A stretch of DNA of 62,569 nt, the filler included, from Basidiobolus meristosporus CBS 931.73 (Eukaryota; Fungi; Basidiobolomycota), in assembly GCA_002104905.1 (NCBI GenBank). It is 5 parts of 5 records of this genome, joined end to end, with 100 filler letters (N's around TTAATTAATTAA, not from the genome) between each part and the next. Parts side by side here need not be neighbours in the genome. Positions count along the whole stretch, not along the records: positions 1 to 13,704 come from MCFE01001198.1; 4 more parts are not named here. The stretch is one strand, 5' to 3'. Positions 1-13,704 of the stretch are shown piece by piece (the first letter of the stretch is position 1; each line of letters opens with the position of its first letter). The position numbers were made by a program, and so were the translations under genes. The notes under the pieces were generated by a model. The model worked only from the letters and a program-made list of their open reading frames with translations. It was not told where the DNA came from and made no database searches.

Positions 1-3000
1 GACAAGGTCGGCATGTGCATCATGTCTTTGTCAACTTTTATTGCCGGGTTTGTCATTGCCTTCCTTGCTGGCTGGAGAATGACTCTTGTGCTGTTAACAG
101 CAGTTCCCGTTATGGGATGTAAGTTGGTTGATTTCTATTGTACCCAGTAATGCTCTAACGTTTGTTTTCTTTAGTCTGCGGCGCTATGATGGCCAAATAC
201 ACCATGGAATCATCCTCAGATGGTCAAGACTCTTATGCCAAAGCAGGTGGTATGGCTGAGCAAGCTATAAGCTCTATCCGCACCGTGGTCGCTTTCAATG
301 GTCAGAATCGGGAAATCAAGCGCTTCGATGAGGTTCTCGCCGACGCGTACAAATCCGGCGTGAAAAAGTCGTTTGTCACCGGCGCTGGCATGGGCTCTTT
401 CATGTTTGTCTTGTTCTGTGCCTATGCCCTAGCTTTCTGGTATGGTGGCCAGCAGGTCAAGGATGGTAAAATGGATAGCGGTGCAGTATTGACTGTTCTG
501 TTCGGTACTATCATCGGTGCCTTCTCCATTGGCAACGTTGGCCCCAATATCGGTGTTTTGGCGAAGGCCCAGGCTGCTGCCTACACCATCTTCGAAACGA
601 TTGATCGTGTACCCTCCATCGATTCCTCCAACCCCAACGGTGAAAAGCCGGAAAATATCCAGGGTCACATTGTCTTGAAAGACATCGATTTCGCGTACCC
701 ATCTCGGCCCGATGTTCCTATTTTGAAAAAGATGTCAATCGAAGTCAAGCCCGGTCAAACGGTCGCCTTGGTTGGCCATTCTGGATCCGGAAAGTCCACA
801 ATCGTCGGTCTCTTGGAGCGTTTCTACGACCCTTTGTCAGGTTCCATCACTTTGGATGGGATTGAGATCAAGGATTACAATGTTGCTCATCTCCGCAACA
901 CCATCGGCCTTGTCTCACAGGAACCGGTGCTTTTCAACGCAACTGTCAAGCAGAACATTCTCTATGGCGCCAGAAAGGGCCAGACCATCCCCACGGACAA
1001 GGAGATCGAGACTGCCTGTCGCTTGGCAAATGCTCATGATTTCATTTCCAACCTCCCTAACAAATACAACACAATGGTTGGTGAGAAGGGAGCGCTTTTG
1101 TCTGGAGGCCAAAAGCAGCGCATTGCCATTGCCCGTGCTTTGATCAAGAACCCACGTGTTTTGCTTCTTGATGAGGCCACTTCTGCTCTGGATACTGAAT
1201 CGGAGCGCATTGTGCAAGCGGCCTTGGATAACGCCGCCAACGGACGTTCCACCATTGTGATTGCTCACCGCCTTTCAACCATTATCAATGCCGATCTGAT
1301 TTATGTCATGGATCGCGGGGTTGTTTTGGAATCCGGTACGCATGAATCGCTGATGGCTCTGAATGGAACGTATGCCGAGTTGGTTGCCAAGCAGCAACTC
1401 AAGACTCTCGCTGTCGAAACCTCACCCCAGACCACCATTGCCGATGACTGTACACAGCTTGAACGCAAGAGCACCCAGGGATCAATTCTTCGCCTCAAGT
1501 CCTCGCACACTTTGGACCATCCTGGCCCCACCGTCTTGGACATCCCTGAGGATAATGAGATGTCCGAGGCCCGTCGCAAGAAGGAAGCCGCCCGCAAATT
1601 AAAGAAACAAAAAGCCCCCATTAGTCGTACGCTTGTTTATATGCGTCCGGATTACTCCATTTGTATTCTCGGCTGCGTCTTTGCCATGCTCCAGGGCGCT
1701 CTTTTCCCAACCTTTTCCCAGGTGTTTGCTAAGGCACTTGACGCCCTCACAAGATCACAACAGCCCGACTACGATTTTACCGGGAATATTCGCCGATTCT
1801 CTCTTTATTTCGTGGCCCTGGCCGTTGCTGGGTTCATCGGGTTTTGCGGCGGTATGGCAACATTCATGATTGTTGGTGAGCGCATGACTCGCCGTATGCG
1901 TTCCATCTCCTATCGCGCCATCCTGTCGCAGGAGATGGGCTTCTTTGACAAACCAGAAAACAGCACTGGCGCGCTTGCCTCCCGCCTCGCCACAGACGCA
2001 CAGCAAATGTACGACATGGTCTCCCAGGTTATCTTGACAACCGTCTCCTCCCTGGCCACCATTGCCTGTGGGCTTGGCTTTGCGTTTGCCGCCACCTGGC
2101 AGTTGACTCTTATCATTCTTGCCGCGGTACCCATCATTGGATTTGCTCAGTACCTCGAATTGGCTGCATTGACTGGTTTCGGAGAAAAAACCCGCAAGGC
2201 CTATGAGAAATCGGGCCAGGTTGCCGGCGAAGCCATTGCCAATATTCGGACCGTTGCGTCTTTGGCGAAGGAGGACATGTTCGAAGAACGGTATTTCGAG
2301 GTCACCAAGGAGCCCCACAAGTATGCCATCAACAAGGCACTATTCGCCTCGATCGGCTTTGCCGTTTCCCAGGCGGTTGCCATCTGGTCGTACTCTATTG
2401 GTTTCTATGCTGGCTATCGTCTGGTCGAAAACTACATTATCGGCTGGGATGCCATGTTCAAATGCATGTTCGGGATCGTCTTCATGGCCATGTCGCTCGG
2501 CCACATCACCGCCGAATTGCCCAAGTTTGCCAAGGGCAAGCAATCTGCCATCAACATCTACGAGCTTTTGGACAAGGAGACTGAGATCGATGCCAACAGG
2601 GATGGCGCCATCATCAACAAGGTGACCGGGACCATGGGATTGGAAAAGGTCGACTTCGCCTATCCTACCCGACCCGATATCCAGGTCTTCAACAAGGTTG
2701 ATGTTGCCATCCGCCCATCACAGACCGTGGCGCTCGTTGGTCCATCTGGATGCGGCAAGTCGACCATTATCGCACTGATGGAGCGTTGGTACGACACCCT
2801 CGAGGGGCGGGCCTACGTGGAGGACTACAACATCAAGGATCTCCAACTGAACAACATTCGCTCGCATATGGCGCTTGTTGGTCAAGAGCCCGTCTTGTTC
2901 GATTTCTCGATCCGTGAAAACATCCTTTACGGTCTACCCGAAGGCGAAGGAACGCAGGAACAAGTCGAGGCAGCCGCCAAGCTGTCCAACATTCACAACT

Positions 3001-3362
3001 TCGTCATGTCCCTTCCTGACGGCTATGATACCTCGGTTGGTGACAAGGGATCCCAATTGTCCGGTGGCCAGAAGCAGCGCATCGCAATTGCTCGTGCTTT
3101 GATCCGTAACCCCAAGATCCTGCTGCTGGATGAGGCCACCTCTGCTTTGGACTCGGAGTCCGAGAAGCTGGTCCAAGAGGCATTGGACCAGGCCCGTTCT
3201 GGACGTACCACAATTGTGATTGCTCATCGACTCAGCACCATCCAGGATGCCGACTTGATTTTGGTTGTCAAAGGGGGCAACATTGTTGAGTCCGGTAAAC
3301 ACCGTGAGTTGCTAACCTTGGGTGGCGTCTATGCAGAGCTTTGTAAAAAGCAAAACCTGTAA
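1..3362 (+). CDS. ABCB/MDR (P-glycoprotein-like) full-size ABC transporter, 5' end outside the window; intron at 119..174
   Basis: TMD-NBD-TMD-NBD layout. Walker A GHSGSGKS and GPSGCGKS, signature LSGGQKQR twice, Walker B LLLDEATSALD twice. Bases 1..118 read DKVGMCIMSLSTFIAGFVIAF... and splice in frame through GTAAGT...CTAAC...TTTAG. Confidence 0.95.
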
Positions 3363-4735: not shown

Positions 4736-4759
4736 AATCTAATCTGATGTGTTCTCGTG

Positions 4760-5460
4760 ACAACAGACCGTGTACACTCCAACCACATCCGGGCCATCGA
4801 GCGTTCTGCTTACGAGCTTGGCAAACAGACAAGAACTCCCACGTTGTTCAACGACGTTGGACCAGAATCAATGTCAATAGTGAGCCACATCCTCACTCTT
4901 TCTATCGTAATGGCAGTGAGACCAGAGAGACCTGGGTCACTGTTGCCGCTGACAGCGTGAACATCAAGTCCGGATTGGAAGGGCTGCTGGGGTTGAAGGC
5001 TACTGGCTCCTCCTTCAGCAACTTTCATCTCTGTGAGAACACCACCCTTCAGGATGCCGATGACCGCATCTTCTTCACCACCGTCAATACCTCGATCGGC
5101 GTTGAGAACATTTCTTTCGACCGCATCTTCTTCACCACCGTCAATACCTCGATCGGCGTTGAGAACATTTCTTTCGACCGCATCTTTGTGGGAGTCCGCG
5201 AGACCACCTTGGATGTGTTCGCTCACGAAGACTCTACCTCCACTCAGGCCACCCTGTGCTGCACGGCTGGGTTAATCTTAAAGCGGTCCCCTGAAGTCCA
5301 GGATGTATACTATGCACTCCACAACAGTCACCACTTCACCACCAACCTTGCACACTCTAATCTCCCCAATGCTGGTTCGGAGATCACAATTATCTAACCA
5401 GTGACTGATTTCTATGGATACGCCGCTGCCACCATTGGTTGTGGTGGTAGCAAATTCCAA
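4760..5460 (+). pseudogene. Degenerate uricase of the second paralog type (like 41361..41646)
   Basis: Translates to RWTRINVNSEPHPHSF...LKATGSSFSNFHLCENTTLQDADDRIF...ETTLDVFA...YYALHNSHHFTTNL. It has a frameshift near 4825, an internal duplication, a premature TAA at 5395-5397 and no start. Confidence 0.85.
5062..5185 (+). repeat. Perfect 57-bp tandem duplication (two units plus a 10-bp partial) inside the uricase pseudogene
   Basis: gaccgcatcttcttcaccaccgtcaatacctcgatcggcgttgagaacatttctttc occurs at 5062 and 5119, encoding DRIFFTTVNTSIGVENISF twice. Confidence 0.95.
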
Positions 5461-6704
5461 TCTACCATTCCTTCATCCGTTGCGAAATTCATTAATTAAA
5501 TCTTTTTAAAAATTTCATCACCTACAGTATACAGCACGAATGCAATAAATAAGTACAGATGGCAATATAACATCTTTTGTGTGCAACAAGATCAGCATCC
5601 CAGGTTGAAATACAGTATTATTAATGCATAGAAGAATCTCAAGTTGCTCAATAACAGATACCAGTGTTGGAACATTTCCCATAATGACAATAGATGAGCA
5701 CTGAAAATTGCTGGAAGGGCAATGACAGTTCTCAAAGACAGAGTAATGAAATGGCTAGCTACTGGGAGGAGTTGGAGCTCATGTACTACTGGCAGCATCT
5801 GCTCTGAATAGCCATAGTGAAGGAGGCAAGGCAAGGTACAACAGCAAATGAGCCTGGTGTGGGCCAACAACACAAGGCAGAATTTAAGGCAAAATTGTAT
5901 ATTTGGTTCAGTTCTTATCAGAATGAGAAATGCTTGAGGGGGAGGATAAGACTATAAAATCCTTTTAGCAACATGGATGCCAAGATATACTGCAAATTAC
6001 AGAAGGGGAACTGGATATGAAGCACAGCAGTTATGCCAATACACTGATGAAGATGATGGAGTATAGAACTGGGTCAGCTGATCATATGATCTGGTCAACC
6101 AACCAGTGCTTACCTACATGATGCTCAATCAATAGTTCTCCACCAGAACCTTTGATGTAATAACTTATTGTGTGACATTGAGAAGGAGAACTCAGGAACC
6201 ATACTCCTGCAGCTTTGCTACCATTCCCACAATTGTAAGTAACAAAAGTGGCAAATATACAATGAACCTAGTCAGAGTGGCAGTGGTGGGACTGAATGTA
6301 GTGGAGGAGGGAGAATTGTAGGGGGGCATATACATGGTAAAGTGAAAAGCAAAATACAATAACTGCTGTTTGCAGTAATACACACACCCATGAAAGAAAT
6401 GTGACTAGAACTGGCAGAATGCTGGTGTAATACCTTCAAAAGTCTATACATTTATTATATCAAAGCTGCAGGTATTTCTCTCTGAGTATTCTTAAATAGA
6501 ATAGATACATGCCAAGATGTATAGACCAGAACATCAACAGAAATGAACATGAGGCTCAATATTGAAATTTGTTATGAGGGCTACAAAACCAGGCAGGGTA
6601 AGTCCTTGTTAGCAAGATTTAGCTCTGACAACACAATAATGATTCTCTCCATGAGCTGAAGAGCTACTGGTAATTAAGGAAGCAATATTGTGATGCATTG
6701 TATA

Positions 6705-7050
6705 TGTTGTAAGAGTTTTGGAGATATTGGATGTGATTGAGAGAGCAAGTATATAAGACAGTTTTCACTTAAAGATTTATTGAATGTAAAGATGGTATTT
6801 GTACTTTAACAAGGTTATGGCAAGATATGCATATAGAATAGGCTGGGATGGTCCTAAGAGCATGTTTGCAAAGTTTGGGGCTGTTTGGACTACTTTAAGA
6901 AATTTCATGTCCTGGCAACCTGATGTGTTGGTGAAGATATTCTAAGTAAATCCCAACAGGTAATTTGGTCAGTGTACTTTAAGATCTCTAGGCAATGCTT
7001 TGAGTGACTAAGTTAGGTGAATATTCAGGTGCAATTACAAAACTTACAAC
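6705..7050 (-). mobile_element. Old, diverged LTR of the copia family at 58337, apparently solo
   Basis: Reverse-complement match to the 58337..58685 LTR (tgttgtaagagttttggaga..., gcaaagtttggggctgtttggac, gtgactaagttaggtgaatatt). Confidence 0.85.
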
Positions 7051-8568: not shown

Positions 8569-9960
8569 TTAATTGAAGGTGGCAATAACAGAGACTGAGT
8601 CAACATCCAGGATGCATTTTTTAGGGATTTGGACGTTGCTCCAGCTGGGTTGCTTCTCCGACTGCTGGAAACACTCATAGAGCGGTCCACCAATTTGTTC
8701 ACCTTCCTTCATAGGCTTCTGAGTTTGCACTTCAACATGCAAATCATAGTCTTTACCAGCAGCGCTCTTGCCCTTATAGTCAAACAGGGCCGAGCCCGAA
8801 CTCCAAGCTGCCTCATCCCATAAATATCCTTGATTTTGGTAAGCAACCAAGAAATCATCGATATATATGTCTGCTGAGTCCCTAGTGCAGGTACAGCTAC
8901 CGGCGTTGTTGGCAAGTTTGAATTTAGAAAACTCCGGCCCTGAGTGCATATGGGACTTGGTTTTTACTCCTTCTGCCTTTGCGTTCTTCCTAACCTGAGG
9001 CCGGTGCTTTGTTACGGGGGCGTCATATTCCAGCTTAGATGAGCCTTTGCAGTAAGCATCGGTGGTACCGCAGTAGCCATAACTGGAGCAGCAGTAACCA
9101 GGCTGGCACTGATGCATCACATCTCCGAACCAGCCACAACGTCTATCAGTTTTATTTGCAACAACGATGTCTATTCCCAGATTATCGGCATCATAGGGAT
9201 ACCACTGCCACTGTTCGGGCTTGTTATTATATCCATGATAGCCAGCTGGACCGTTGATAGACATCCAGATCGCCGTCTGATTTTCTGTTAGACCAGAGCC
9301 CCATGTGCCGTCGGGCCCGGGATATGTGTACGTTATAGAGCCACCCAGTGCAGGGTACCAGTACTTGCTGCCTTCACGTCTGTAAGCTTGTTTACTCCAT
9401 ACGCCCACCCGTACACCATTGCTGATTCCTTGCGGATTTTCGAGAAACTGGTAGAAGTAGCCAAGACCGCTGTTTAAGTTGTCGTTGATAACACGCAATT
9501 TACCAAATTGCATCCATTCGCCATCAATACGTAGCTGGGCAGTGTAGACCAAATAATCACCATCCTCTTCATAGTCAATTCGAAAGCCGTAATCCACTCC
9601 ATCAAGCCATGGATAGAAATACTGCATATGGGATCCAGTGCCTTCGTTGCCAAAGCGACTAGTCACGCATTCCTTGCATGTTTCCACTATGGTTGCTTTT
9701 CCATTGTTGTTGTCCCAGAGAGAGAAGAGGAATACACGTTTGTTGGCCCATGTCTGCATTCCCATGTATCCGTTGTTCCAGGCGATGGCTGCCCAGTAAG
9801 TTTGGTTGGGACTAAATTCAGGAACAGACTTGACATCTGTCTTGAAAGAAATGAATTTACTCCCATTATCGGGGAGGCTGGCCCAGTTGTGCATTGCCTG
9901 AGAAAGCACCTTCACTGCGAACAGCGAGGTAAGCGAGAGGAAAAGGGCTGAAAGCTTCAT
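8569..9960 (-). CDS. Secreted 463-aa protein: signal peptide, DUF3472-like domain (aa ~35-240), hevein/CBM18 chitin-binding module (aa 275-304), basic linker, ~120-aa unknown C-terminal domain
   Basis: Intronless ORF with a hydrophobic N-terminus (MKLSALFLSLTSLFAVKVLSQA). Motifs TYWAAIAWNNGYMGMQ, RVFLFSLWD, FGNEGTG and YQFLEN resemble my recollection of the bacterial DUF3472 family. CGWFGDVMHQCQPGYCCSSYGYCGTTDAYC fits the hevein consensus. Confidence 0.8.
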   Translation of the reverse strand: MKLSALFLSLTSLFAVKVLSQAMHNWASLPDNGSKFISFKTDVKSVPEFSPNQTYWAAIAWNNGYMGMQTWANKRVFLFSLWDNNNGKATIVETCKECVTSRFGNEGTGSHMQYFYPWLDGVDYGFRIDYEEDGDYLVYTAQLRIDGEWMQFGKLRVINDNLNSGLGYFYQFLENPQGISNGVRVGVWSKQAYRREGSKYWYPALGGSITYTYPGPDGTWGSGLTENQTAIWMSINGPAGYHGYNNKPEQWQWYPYDADNLGIDIVVANKTDRRCGWFGDVMHQCQPGYCCSSYGYCGTTDAYCKGSSKLEYDAPVTKHRPQVRKNAKAEGVKTKSHMHSGPEFSKFKLANNAGSCTCTRDSADIYIDDFLVAYQNQGYLWDEAAWSSGSALFDYKGKSAAGKDYDLHVEVQTQKPMKEGEQIGGPLYECFQQSEKQPSWSNVQIPKKCILDVDSVSVIATFN

Positions 9961-12900
9961 GATATCTTGACGAAAGCACGGCCCTCAGCTGTGCTTTTAA
10001 AGTAGTTCCATTTTCCCAGGATAGAGATCACGTTTCGTTACCAACAATGATAGCAAGCCGAGAGTTCGACCTAATTTAGTAGCGTCTGGTTGAGTTAGCC
10101 TATTGTGGCAATTCAGGTAGTGGAATGCATGGATTCTAAATGGTAACCATTGGATATCCATGCAGCTTCTAGAAAATACCCAAAGCGTAATACTATCTTC
10201 CAAGGAGTTCGGAATCATGATCACGCTGGCCTTCAAATGTGGCTTATCCATAAGACTCTTCCTTTACAGCTTAGAAGAGCCTATACAGATGCTTACAACA
10301 TTGGGGGCAAATTGTCAGCTTCAGTCAGGGAAAGTCGGTATCCTTCACCAAGTGTCGAGGAGAAATTATAGAGTGGATGCAATGTCCTGGTGAGACAGTT
10401 TGGCGCAGCTAAATTATAATCCCAGCTGTTCCCGAATGTCAATGTGGTTTGGCATACCTCTAAATAGTCAACAGTATCGAGAATGCAGTAGCATTAGTGT
10501 TTTCACTGCATATTTCAGCAATAACTCAGACCTTTGGAATATCGATTAACCATACCGCTAATGGCATTTGAGTTACCCTAATAGATCCTACCTTCATGCA
10601 TGCTCCTCTAGAACTTCGCAATACCCGAGTGTGTACGGCTTAACAAATAACAATTAACACTTATACAACCTGGCCAATAGGTTGGCAAAAAATTCTCTTA
10701 GAGTATAGCATCATGAATCAGGAAAAATCAAAAAAGAAGAAAAACGTGCTAAGCCCCATTCTGAGCTGAACCAATGAGCATAGAGATTGCTTGGTTAGGC
10801 CCATGTAGCTAGCATTTGATTAGTACATGGAGGATCGAAGGGTCACGCGAGCCAGTTGAGTAATGCTCAAAGGCTGATCAAGTCTAATGATCATATGGAA
10901 GGTTTACTTGTCAGAAATAGCTTTACCTAACAATATGACTTGGGGATTGACCTGGACACTGGAGATGCACACTTGTGGAGCCTTCACATCTCCATGGGCC
11001 TTGATCTCAGCGCCCAGACCTTGGCCGAGAGTACAGGATGCTTATCATCCACGCAACTATCAAAAGCAAGTCTTTCTCGAGAGCACCAAACCACATACAT
11101 GCTATAAGAAGGATTTATCGAACGGAAGCAGCAGTGCTTAATTATCGCGCAATTGAAATAGTGAAGCCATGTCCCCATTTGCTGGTTGCAAGTAGTGGCA
11201 TCAGCAGTTATTGTAGATGGAGAGGAAAATAGAGTCGCATTGTCCCGTCATCTCAGACCTATAGTATTTTACATATCTGCTCTCGCTGGTATACCCTCTC
11301 CGGCATGGATAGCAGAAATGTGCATTATTGATACAATCTCAAACCAAATCTAGTGGTTCTGATCACATCGATCGTTATCTTGATACCAAATTTAAGCTCG
11401 ATGAATCAGAGACTTCTCATGCAACCGAGGAAATTCATAGATGCCGGGGCCAGCAATGCAGTACGGAACGTGTTTACTCAATCCACCCTAAGATTTGCAC
11501 CCCCAAGCCAGCTTTGATGACGATACTTTAGTTATGATCGGGGATTGTTGTGGCTCACTTACCAATGGGAACGCTAATCGCAATCGAAAACCTACTACTG
11601 TGAGTTTATCCATGATCTTACCGATCACCATCTTGATATTGCACGCAACATATACTTATACGGAACAATGCTAGTGTAAGGCTTTCTTGGAACACTTCTT
11701 GGCGGATATTCAGAAAAGCCATGGTTAAGAAAATGCTAGTTAGATATACCACATATAGTAACTGTTACCTAACCCAAAGTTATTCACTCTGATCATGCGG
11801 AGGGGATTTCAAATATAGCACTCAGTTCCACAGTGAACAAAATAGGTTCAATCCTCTCTCAGACCGAAATTTCTCTTGCGCAATGATATATTGGTAAGAA
11901 TCTGAAACCGCGCCTTCTATGGCCTGGAATCTCTCATCAAGGCCGACATTTGGCTGGAAAACAAAGCATGTGAACTGGAGCGATTCCATTTTTACATGTC
12001 TCGGGAATCCAGGTTGCTCAAGCACCGCTACCGATGCAGATCCCTTGGTCAGTGAGCCAATGGAAGCTTATCAGTTATTACTTCAAACGTCGCATTGTCA
12101 CCACATTTAGTGATCGTTCCGAGTGGCTTATGTGTGTTTAAGCGGCATAATGATGGTGTACAGTATTCCTAGAGCACCACACAAATGATATTTCGCGCTG
12201 CCAGAGCCTGAATTATCCTTAATTGATTATCCATACAGTAATTAACGGGGTCATTCTGAGTTTCAGTCTGATCGACCGCGCCGAACAATACATCGTTGCA
12301 ACTAATTAGAAGCATCCTATATGTGACACTTCTGGCGTTGCTTACCAAATTCCCCCTCCACTGAGGGCTGAGCTATATTCAAGTGAATTAGAGAACTACT
12401 AATGCCGGTTGATAACATCATCCCATTAAGTCATTGATACTTGGAACTTACCCTAAATTCCAGTCAAAGATACCTGGGGCTCCTGGACATTGTGAACTAC
12501 CCCTATCAATCGGGAGGTTCACTTTCTCCTTCTGCACTGACACTCCTGCCCTACTCTTGTCTCAAACACGCAGTGTGAGTGAATCTCCCCACCCAACAAG
12601 ACTCATCCACAATAAATTTTCTGAAGCTCTGAGCAGCTTTTTGTAGCAGCTCCTCCTGGGGTACACTATGATAACCAGTAAAATACACAGCCTGTGTGGA
12701 TACCAATTCCGACTGTATTGTACAGAAAGTATCATATAGGGAAACAACGCCATTAGAAGAGCTTTTTCATACATTACAAAAGCTGGTTAACATTTTGTTT
12801 CACTGATATTACTTGCTTGGCTTGACATCAATTGGCTGAATAGTTTGGGTAGCTCATAATGAAGGCTAGAACAACAATACTCAGGGTCTAGGTGTTAACA

Positions 12901-13380
12901 GGGTAAAAAACACCAACTGGTGAAGTCTTTATTGAAGTGACTCAAAATAAAGTAGCCAGTTGCTACACTATAAGCATTTTCATATGTGAATAAAGACAAG
13001 TGTCATTTTTGAAAAGCTCAGAAGAGAGATCACTAAGTTCCAGAGGAGTTAAATCAGAGTTAAGTAGTACTTGGGTGATAACTAAGGGATGTAATAATAT
13101 ATCCACAACTGCCACAAAGTTGGACAAATATGGATTGGGGCAAGTAAGAGTGCAGTATCATGACTGAGATTGCTCTACCATCAAGTGAAGTATACATTGT
13201 ATAGACAAGTGCCAAGTTTATTGTGTCCTGCACATGCTGAGCAAAATGATATGTCTCAGAATCAACAAGTCAATTATACATTTCTGATACAGTATAATTC
13301 AGTAAGTACCAAAAGCCTGGACCACTAGTTGCAATTAATATGGGTGTGGATAGGTGAACAAGATAAATGACAATTGTATC

Positions 13381-13704
13381 TGTTGTGAAAATTTGTATTT
13401 CCACCTAAATATTCACCTAACTTAGTCACTTGGATCATTACCTTCATATCCTAGAGAATACTGACCATATTCCTTGTTGGGATTTACTTGGAATATTTTC
13501 ACCAAAATACCAGGTACCCAGAACATCAAAATTTTCAAAGTTGTCCAAACAGCCCCAAACTTTGCACACATGTTCTTGGGACCTTCATTCACCTATTCTA
13601 CGTGTTTTTTATGCCAAGACCAGATAAGAGTATTAATACTACTTTTACATTCAATAAATCATTAAGTGAAAGCCACATAATCTACTTGTCCTCCTAATCA
13701 CTTC
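13381..13704 (+). mobile_element. Copia-family LTR, cut by the assembly gap
   Basis: Starts tgttgtgaaaattt and is highly similar to 58337..58660 (cacctaaatattcacctaacttagtcact..., ccaaacagccccaaactttgcacacatgttcttgggacc). Confidence 0.9.

Follow-up and report, generated by a model that had tools for sequence, protein, structure and literature searches.

The locus considered here raises the question of what a predicted secreted protein, assembled from a domain known mainly from bacteria, a hevein-type chitin-binding module and an unnamed cysteine-containing domain, does in the fungus Basidiobolus meristosporus, and how such an assembly arose. The gene occupies positions 8569..9960, on the minus strand, of a 62,569-nucleotide stretch of DNA (hereafter the window) joined from five parts of the assembly GCA_002104905.1 of strain CBS 931.73. 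Translation gives an intact single-exon open reading frame (ORF) of 463 amino acids (aa) running from ATG to TAA, and the public annotation of the contig concerned (MCFE01001198.1, 13,704 bp, reversed in the window) likewise has one uninterrupted exon with ends identical to those of the ORF. We consider it probable, with some reserve, that the product is a secreted modular protein which acts extracellularly on a chitin-containing surface, where it would bind or cleave glycans. What is new at this locus is the C-terminal domain, which is restricted to Basidiobolus, and its cassette-like presence; the core to which it is attached, DUF3472 plus a family 18 carbohydrate-binding module (CBM18), is already catalogued, in the form of uncharacterised proteins.

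Domain architecture

An earlier note on this DNA had read the product as a chimera of a signal peptide, a DUF3472-like domain, a hevein chitin-binding module and an unknown domain containing cysteines. This three-part architecture behind a leader is confirmed by the ORF, by Pfam and by direct reading of the sequence (Table 1), and the last part proves to be a four-Cys domain matched by nothing in Pfam or among PDB sequences. Residues 1-22 read as a typical signal peptide in which positions -3 and -1 hold small residues, and secretion is predicted from it. The same leader is conserved in two close paralogues, P0002 and, at its unannotated true start, P0003.

The N-terminal domain was assigned correctly to DUF3472 (PF11958), which it matches over aa 14-257 with an E-value of 1.1e-40 (140.4 bits, the cut-off being 24.8, over model positions 7-255 of 269); DUF5077, which had been named alongside it, is absent from the 463-aa protein in Pfam. 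A newer Pfam release names the family after BPSS1860, and the supplement to PMC11291939 places it in clan CL0004, the concanavalin-like lectins/glucanases. The domain is homologous to the Bacteroides structure 4qhw (E 2e-6 in a single-sequence search, 8e-38 when a profile is used) and to 8pmu, 8pn3 and 8pn5 (E 4e-19 for 8pmu), entries named 'DUF3472 domain-containing protein'. Both 4qhw and its uncharacterised companion 4qhx, and the 659-aa protein of 8pmu/8pn3/8pn5, share the motifs E-G-(S/T)-G and F-x-E-(N/D) with the fungal domain. They differ from the fungal protein in being multi-domain bacterial proteins, for which neither a publication nor a stated function was found.

Conservation within the family was read from an alignment of the 463-aa protein, seven relatives and 80 bacterial homologues, giving 88 Basidiobolus, metagenomic and bacterial sequences. 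Seven residues (Y65, Q69, W82, E106, W118, W149 and E174 in the numbering of the 463-aa protein) are invariant in all 88, D83 and R184 are near-invariant, and the nine residues of this putative site, conserved at 98-100%, are all kept in the protein studied here. At the column of Glu174, in the F-L-E-N motif, 8pn3 and 8pn5 carry Ala where 8pmu has Glu (Q-A-D against Q-E-D). Glu-to-Ala variants of this kind are usually made by depositors at a catalytic or key ligand residue. The two deposited variants therefore point to a key site residue at the Glu174 position, and imply unpublished work in which DUF3472 is treated as a domain with an active site or a key binding site; a literature search on 8pmu/8pn3/8pn5 and on DUF3472 biochemistry found no paper.

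The second module matches Chitin_bind_1 (PF00187) at aa 274-305 with an E-value of 5.9e-8 (33.3 bits, the cut-off being 27.8, over model positions 1-31 of 38). Its hevein core runs from Cys275 to Cys304, exactly the 9049..9138 at which an intact six-Cys motif with its sugar-binding residues had been proposed, and its cysteines stand at 275, 285, 290, 291, 297 and 304. The last Cys pair of the canonical eight-Cys, four-disulfide hevein pattern is missing; the six-Cys form is a known truncated hevein-like form, as in Ac-AMP2. Among PDB sequences the module aligns to hevein, to pokeweed lectin-C and to the six-Cys peptide Ac-AMP2 itself, and its stretch S-S-Y-G-Y-C-G-T-T-D-A-Y falls opposite the matching stretch of pokeweed lectin-C and hevein. 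The sugar-binding positions, an aromatic triad of Tyr294, Tyr296 and Tyr303 with Ser292/293, are intact, and in hevein the corresponding Ser/Tyr/Tyr/Tyr positions stack on N-acetylglucosamine.

A C-terminal domain restricted to Basidiobolus

Residues 306-463 of the protein gave no credible Pfam match. When aa 320-463 were searched with phmmer against 1.84 billion representative sequences, four convincing matches were returned, all of them from Basidiobolus (B. meristosporus and B. ranarum), with E-values from 1e-36 to 6e-16. No match came from metagenomes scanned with the whole protein or with an alignment of the C-terminal domain, the eight members of the family have no Pfam match at E up to 10, and their profile matches no PDB sequence. 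Weak phmmer matches to a Tahibacter GEVED protein and to two metagenomic proteins were rejected at hhalign probabilities of 7% and 0.7%.

The best match, P0010 (E 1e-36), forms one 90%-identity cluster with its near-copy P0017, and each of the two has the domain twice, behind a signal peptide. P0011 and P0013 have a Ser/Thr-rich region followed by the domain, and P0012 (B. ranarum K7432_017932) has DUF3472 (Pfam E 3e-20) upstream of it, without CBM18. Eight copies align through a C-x-C pair, the helix motif D-F-L-x-A-x-Q-x-x-G-Y-x-W-D, the motif L-Y-E-C-F and a last Cys; the copy in the 463-aa protein, at 32-42% identity, keeps all four cysteines (356, 358, 430 and 449) and the motif residues of the family. 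As judged from these searches and alignments, the domain is a genuine, recurrent and unnamed family seen only in Basidiobolus. Its members P0010 and P0017 (ORX92354.1 and ORX92355.1) are 335 aa each, with consecutive accessions on one 103-kb contig, and their long Ser/Thr/Ala/Pro-rich (mucin-like) linkers suggest wall-associated glycoproteins.

An AlphaFold2 model of the domain, built on a small alignment, reached a predicted local distance difference test score (pLDDT) of 83 and a predicted template modelling (pTM) score of 0.77. Its chain runs through three strands into a long helix, then through two strands, a second helix and three more strands, and its lowest pLDDT (68) falls in its first ten residues, aa 340-349, at the C-terminal end of the linker. 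A reading of the domain as a galactose-binding-like or CBM30 beta-sandwich, to which a protein language model had given a score of 0.90, is not borne out by this alpha+beta model. Foldseek returned nothing below E 0.001 (best E 0.02), the top rows being DUF26 ectodomains of PDLP proteins, ginkbilobin-2 and KP4. An independent structural alignment against representatives gave as its best six the Lyophyllum decastes alpha-galactosyl lectin (LDL), PDLP8, PDLP5, ginkbilobin-2 (Gnk2) with mannose, Coprinus Y3 and Zt-KP4, ahead of generic PAS and FKBP folds; the top match, LDL, has a Z score of 5.3 and a root-mean-square deviation (rmsd) of 2.6 over 82 residues, in a range (Z under 8) where a match can mean a common arrangement only.

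LDL, Y3 and DUF26 belong to a recognised structural group whose members are small secreted proteins that bind carbohydrates (PMC6368629), and LDL, Y3 (Coprinus comatus), Gnk2/DUF26 and KP4 resemble the model in their alpha+beta sandwich, size, disulfides and extracellular setting. However, they share no sequence similarity with it (4-12% identity), it has no Pfam match such as Stress-antifung, and its cysteines follow a C-x-C...C...C pattern rather than the C-x8-C-x2-C of the lectin-like group. With scores this low, the model weakly suggests a lectin-like domain, as a lead and not as a classification.

Paralogues and the C-terminal cassette

The closest paralogues in the same genome are P0002 (K493DRAFT_302503), of 330 aa and 84% identical to the 463-aa protein, and P0003 (K493DRAFT_312269), with 69-71% identity. 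Like the window gene (P0001) they have a signal peptide, DUF3472, a six-Cys CBM18 and a single exon, but they end right after CBM18, without the linker and C-terminal domain that give the window gene 133 codons more. Both are uncharacterised, and the DUF3472 and CBM18 pair is listed in UniRef in chitin-binding type-1 domain proteins. The claim that the architecture was unrecorded therefore fails for this pair, found again in the same genome and of a fusion type already published (PMC11291939). The most novel part is the C-terminal domain. P0002 is present four times, each of two contigs holding one inverted pair (L001 1226-2218 and 6001-6993; L002 1227-2219 and 6001-6993), head-to-head and 3.8 kb apart in nearly the same layout on both; the duplication may be recent and segmental, or the contigs may represent uncollapsed haplotypes. 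The public model of P0003 (278 aa) is truncated at its N-terminus, since on L003 (5872-6000) the frame stays open upstream as far as an ATG at 5872, and the added part codes for the signal peptide also found in the 463-aa protein.

Further DUF3472 copies are P0004 (45% identity, without CBM18) and P0006 in B. meristosporus, and P0005 and P0012 in B. ranarum. In a maximum-likelihood tree, seven Basidiobolus DUF3472 domains form one long-branched group against 70 bacterial and metagenomic rows, with a support of 99 in the Shimodaira-Hasegawa-like approximate likelihood ratio test (SH-aLRT); the tree is unrooted and comprises Basidiobolus and bacterial/metagenomic rows, with no other eukaryotes and with the Actinomycetota relatives missing. 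Within the group the three CBM18 proteins P0001, P0002 and P0003 form a subclade (99) to which P0004 is sister (96). Because the CBM18 proteins form one subclade, CBM18 was fused once, in their common ancestor.

At the DNA level the window gene and the P0002 loci share 83% identity over a stretch that begins 160 nt upstream of the start and reaches codon 329. Next comes a block of about 400 nt which is present only in the window gene, and homology picks up again at the stop codon and continues through the 3' flank. A chimeric assembly is disfavoured because this single in-frame indel sits in colinear flanks. That the segment might be an intron was also rejected: it is in frame, conserved and confidently folding in the model, and the only plausible GT/AG pair would not give the short form. 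The C-terminal extension has no Met, start-codon context or leader of its own.

The same four-Cys domain is joined to DUF3472 in two distant paralogues, the window gene and K7432_017932. In the latter, DUF3472 is followed by a Ser/Thr/Lys-rich linker and a C-terminal domain with 41-42% identity; it differs in having no CBM18, in belonging to another DUF3472 sublineage and in an ORF that is open to the edge of its 1.6-kb contig. In the tree of the C-terminal domain, the two DUF3472-attached copies split from the Ser/Thr-linker proteins with moderate support (86/88). This topology fits an old linkage of DUF3472 and the C-terminal domain with later losses, gain and loss not being distinguishable here.

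Family distribution and origin

The view that DUF3472 is mainly bacterial holds, in that the family is bacteria-dominated with a patchy eukaryotic occurrence. A scan of 185,579 species with a six-sequence alignment led by P0007, which returns the bacteria closest to P0007 and not those closest to the fungal proteins, confirmed 550 bacterial DUF3472 loci; Planctomycetota make up most of the best 80 of the 550, next to some Verrucomicrobiota, Abditibacteriota and others. The Atlas clusters nearest to the domain are mostly bacterial and rich in Actinomycetota. P0007, the nearest relative outside Basidiobolus in the profile search, is a 271-aa protein with a single DUF3472 domain and a Lys-rich tail, and its gene (L005-L007; GCA_019826065.1, GCA_019825985.1 and SRR15291762) is surrounded by bacterial housekeeping genes, with peptidase M14, radical SAM, TyrRS and CvfB among its neighbours.

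The nearest relatives reached outside Basidiobolus are bacterial, at 27-37% identity, and motifs found only in Basidiobolus have no carrier among the 185,579 species. Word-index searches with the whole protein, the N-terminal domain and a four-sequence profile returned only Basidiobolus paralogues, one bacterial and one metagenomic protein, with E-values scaled to 5.8 billion sequences, at which distant bacterial kin fall out. These word and profile searches gave no other fungal DUF3472 match, a negative that is limited by the word index since chytrid members do exist: chytrid DUF3472 xenologues appear as Cluster_414 in the part of the PMC11291939 supplement available to us, where the Basidiobolus copies are not among the xenologues.

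Transfer of DUF3472 from bacteria has been published for centipedes, venom proteins included (PMC7864903), and for chytrids (PMC11291939); the centipede and chytrid proteins are, like the window gene, eukaryotic members of a bacteria-dominated family. They differ from it in that they have neither CBM18 nor the C-terminal domain, and many centipede forms carry an N-terminal DUF5077. B. meristosporus itself is known for many bacterial-like genes (PMC7466969), and Ciach et al. (2024) described fused domains in 100 of 829 xenologues in early-diverging fungi, a Chitin_bind_1 fusion included (PMC11291939). The evolutionary pattern, in which a bacterial-type domain is joined after its transfer to a carbohydrate-binding module of the fungus, is the same, although for the window gene the transfer itself is a plausible, unproven step. 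A bacterial origin of the Basidiobolus DUF3472 domain is plausible on this sequence evidence; any transfer must be old because the clade is long-branched and internally deep. The specific course of an old single acquisition from bacteria followed by expansion is likewise plausible, and we would give it roughly an even chance.

Proposed function and alternatives

In the favoured reading, that of an extracellular protein acting on a chitin-containing surface, the signal peptide would export the product and the six-Cys hevein module would tether it to chitin, whether of the organism's own wall, of other fungi or of arthropod cuticle. The DUF3472 domain, a predicted concanavalin-like beta-sandwich with Glu106, Glu174, Arg184 and a set of Trp and Tyr residues, would bind and probably cleave a glycan beside this anchor, and the disulfide-stabilised alpha+beta C-terminal domain may add a second, lectin-like binding function. 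Such a protein would have come about through expansion, within Basidiobolus, of a DUF3472 gene from a bacteria-dominated family to at least seven copies in one clade, with CBM18 fused in the P0001/P0002/P0003 ancestor as described above and the C-terminal domain forming a clean in-frame cassette that some copies have and others lack. We lean towards a catalytic DUF3472 because the acidic pair is invariant, because E-to-A structures have been engineered and because carbohydrate-binding modules are usually appended to enzymes.

Several points weigh against this reading. A published enzymatic activity for any DUF3472 member was not found, the E-to-A variants are indirect evidence of catalysis, and the sole functional study of the family that was found points to adhesion rather than catalysis (PMC7998038). 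A single-sequence AlphaFold2 model of the whole protein was unusable (pLDDT 34), and the Glu106/Glu174 site is accordingly defined from sequence. The fold matches of the C-terminal domain are weak (Z 4.3-5.3, rmsd 2.6-4.8 over 82-95 residues, TM score below 0.45), and because of these low Z scores common ancestry with LDL, Y3, Gnk2 and KP4 is not established. Since close paralogues have no C-terminal domain, it must be dispensable for at least some functions of the family. Expression and secretion of the 463-aa product are, moreover, predicted from the sequence, and a look-up of RNA runs for this stretch listed none.

The protein could instead be a non-catalytic adhesin or multivalent lectin, in which three binding-only modules would glue hyphae or spores onto surfaces made of chitin or glycan, a strong competing reading that we nonetheless regard as rather doubtful. 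It draws on BPSS1860 of Burkholderia pseudomallei, the only member of the Pfam family found with a functional phenotype, a surface-exposed protein with a signal sequence whose loss costs about 90% of host-cell attachment, leaving about 10% (PMC7998038); the binding character of CBM18 and of a lectin-like C-terminal domain, and the lack of a published hydrolase activity for DUF3472 in our search, agree with it. BPSS1860, however, is bacterial, has neither CBM18 nor the C-terminal domain and is likened to the fungal protein by family and not by direct sequence comparison, so that its adhesive role may not carry over. The invariant Glu/Glu/Arg/Asp set, kept over 88 distant sequences, is also a feature more usual in active sites than in lectin sites, an E-to-A variant was made by those who deposited 8pmu at one of these invariant residues, and the usual partners of carbohydrate-binding modules are enzymes.

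The earlier note had itself gone further and seen a horizontal gain of a bacterial domain, fused to a chitin anchor to give an enzyme or effector in a layout reminiscent of zymocin/Hce2-type toxin delivery; taken as a recent gain with a toxin-delivery role, this now appears improbable. The bacterial dominance of DUF3472 in the scan and in the Atlas clusters, the published transfers into centipedes and chytrids, the intronless gene, the lack of another fungal match in the word and profile searches and the presence of the KP4 killer toxin among the weak fold matches are all in keeping with it. But the best bacterial identity of 27-37% leaves no close donor, the Basidiobolus motifs occur in none of the species scanned, and the long-branched, internally deep clade makes any transfer old, as judged from a tree that has neither a root nor other eukaryotes. 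The GC content at third codon positions, moreover, is uniform over the three modules (0.50-0.52) and below that of the neighbouring genes (0.62), so that there is no compositional mosaic, and the toxin analogy falls away in that no GH18, Hce2 or toxin family is matched in Pfam at E up to 1. It is very unlikely that the C-terminal extension is instead non-functional (produced by read-through, left as a decaying remnant or created in assembly) and that the working protein is the 330-aa form of DUF3472 and CBM18. The end of P0002 and P0003 just after CBM18, the shortness of the contig (13.7 kb, ending in a repeat) and the lack of any RNA run listed for this stretch speak for it; against it, the 133 extra codons are open in frame, the four cysteines and the motif residues are kept at 32-42% identity, the extension folds confidently in the model, both flanks are colinear with the paralogue loci, and B. 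ranarum has the same pairing of DUF3472 and C-terminal domain. The most far-reaching version of the favoured reading is unlikely to hold jointly in all its parts: that the C-terminal module founds a Basidiobolus-restricted lectin-like or killer-toxin-like family, that DUF3472 is an unclassified glycoside hydrolase family with Glu106 and Glu174 as catalytic pair, and that a chitin-anchored enzyme with a domain of bacterial descent is used on fungi or arthropod cuticle.

Genomic setting

The surroundings of the gene had been described as accessory DNA rich in transposable elements, which is borne out in so far as the flanks are AT-rich (39-41% GC), poor in ORFs and contain dispersed repeats some 330 nt long, but not for the nearest genes, which are an ABCB-type transporter and a uricase fragment. 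The repeat flanks the gene as inverted arms 6.3 kb apart, with two further copies in L003 (96-443 and 4431-4765) and 77-94% identity between copies; it may be a MITE-like (miniature inverted-repeat transposable element) or LTR-like (long terminal repeat) element. A second short dispersed repeat links window 11337-11754 with L009 11772-13188 at 70-88% identity, and the L009 contig carries P0011 and P0013, two of the genes with the C-terminal domain.

The transporter (window 13-3362, plus strand) is a full ABCB/MDR-type protein with two ABC_membrane and two ABC_tran domains, its public call starting about 12 nt from the contig start. On the same strand at 4747-5397, a 216-aa ORF has a Uricase Pfam match (E 2e-24) over two stretches, and within it a 19-residue segment is duplicated exactly in tandem. 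Another short uricase-like gene call adjoins the ORF, which looks like a rearranged or fragmentary uricase gene.

Table 1. Features of the gene and its flanks, in positions of the window.
Feature	Position	Strand	Basis
Complete gene, 463 codons + TAA	8569..9960	-	stop at 8569..8571; ORF list, public gene call, translation
Signal peptide, aa 1-22 (predicted)	9895..9960	-	basic N-end, hydrophobic core, S-Q-A ahead of predicted cut
DUF3472/BPSS1860 domain, aa 23-262	9175..9894	-	Pfam PF11958, PDB homologues
Glu106, F-G-x-E-G-T-G motif	9643..9645	-	E in 88/88
Glu174, F-L-E-N motif	9439..9441	-	E in 88/88; aligned to Glu altered in 8pn3/8pn5
Arg184, near-invariant site residue	9409..9411	-	R in 87/88
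CBM18/hevein chitin-binding module, aa 274-305	9046..9141	-	Pfam PF00187
Basic Lys/Arg-rich linker, aa 306-350	8911..9045	-	calculated isoelectric point about 10
C-terminal 4-Cys alpha+beta domain, aa 351-463	8572..8910	-	phmmer, alignment of copies, AlphaFold2 model
In-frame indel of ~400 nt against P0002 (most of linker + C-terminal domain)	8575..8973	-	blastn + global alignment against L001/L002
Dispersed ~330-nt repeat, one arm of inverted pair around gene	6705..7050	.	repeat comparison
Dispersed ~330-nt repeat, second, inverted copy	13378..13704	.	contig ends within copy

Significance

The window gene fits a known pattern in which a bacterial-type domain is expanded in an early-diverging fungus and host binding modules are then fused to it (PMC11291939). 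Although DUF3472 is encoded in hundreds of bacterial genomes and is present in centipede venoms and in a Burkholderia virulence factor, no published biochemistry was found for it. A fungal DUF3472 domain placed on a chitin anchor narrows the search for a ligand, and the conserved Glu/Glu/Arg site gives mutants that can be tested.

The C-terminal domain is a clean lineage-restricted domain which occurs on Ser/Thr-rich secreted proteins or fused to DUF3472, and is useful for following the birth and shuffling of modules in early-diverging fungi. No major concept is changed by this locus, and the window gene is a good candidate for focused biochemistry. Basidiobolus is a gut symbiont of herptiles, with B. 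meristosporus living in the gut of amphibians, and an occasional human pathogen, and because of this way of life secreted proteins that would bind surfaces, of the kind predicted here, are of both ecological and medical relevance.

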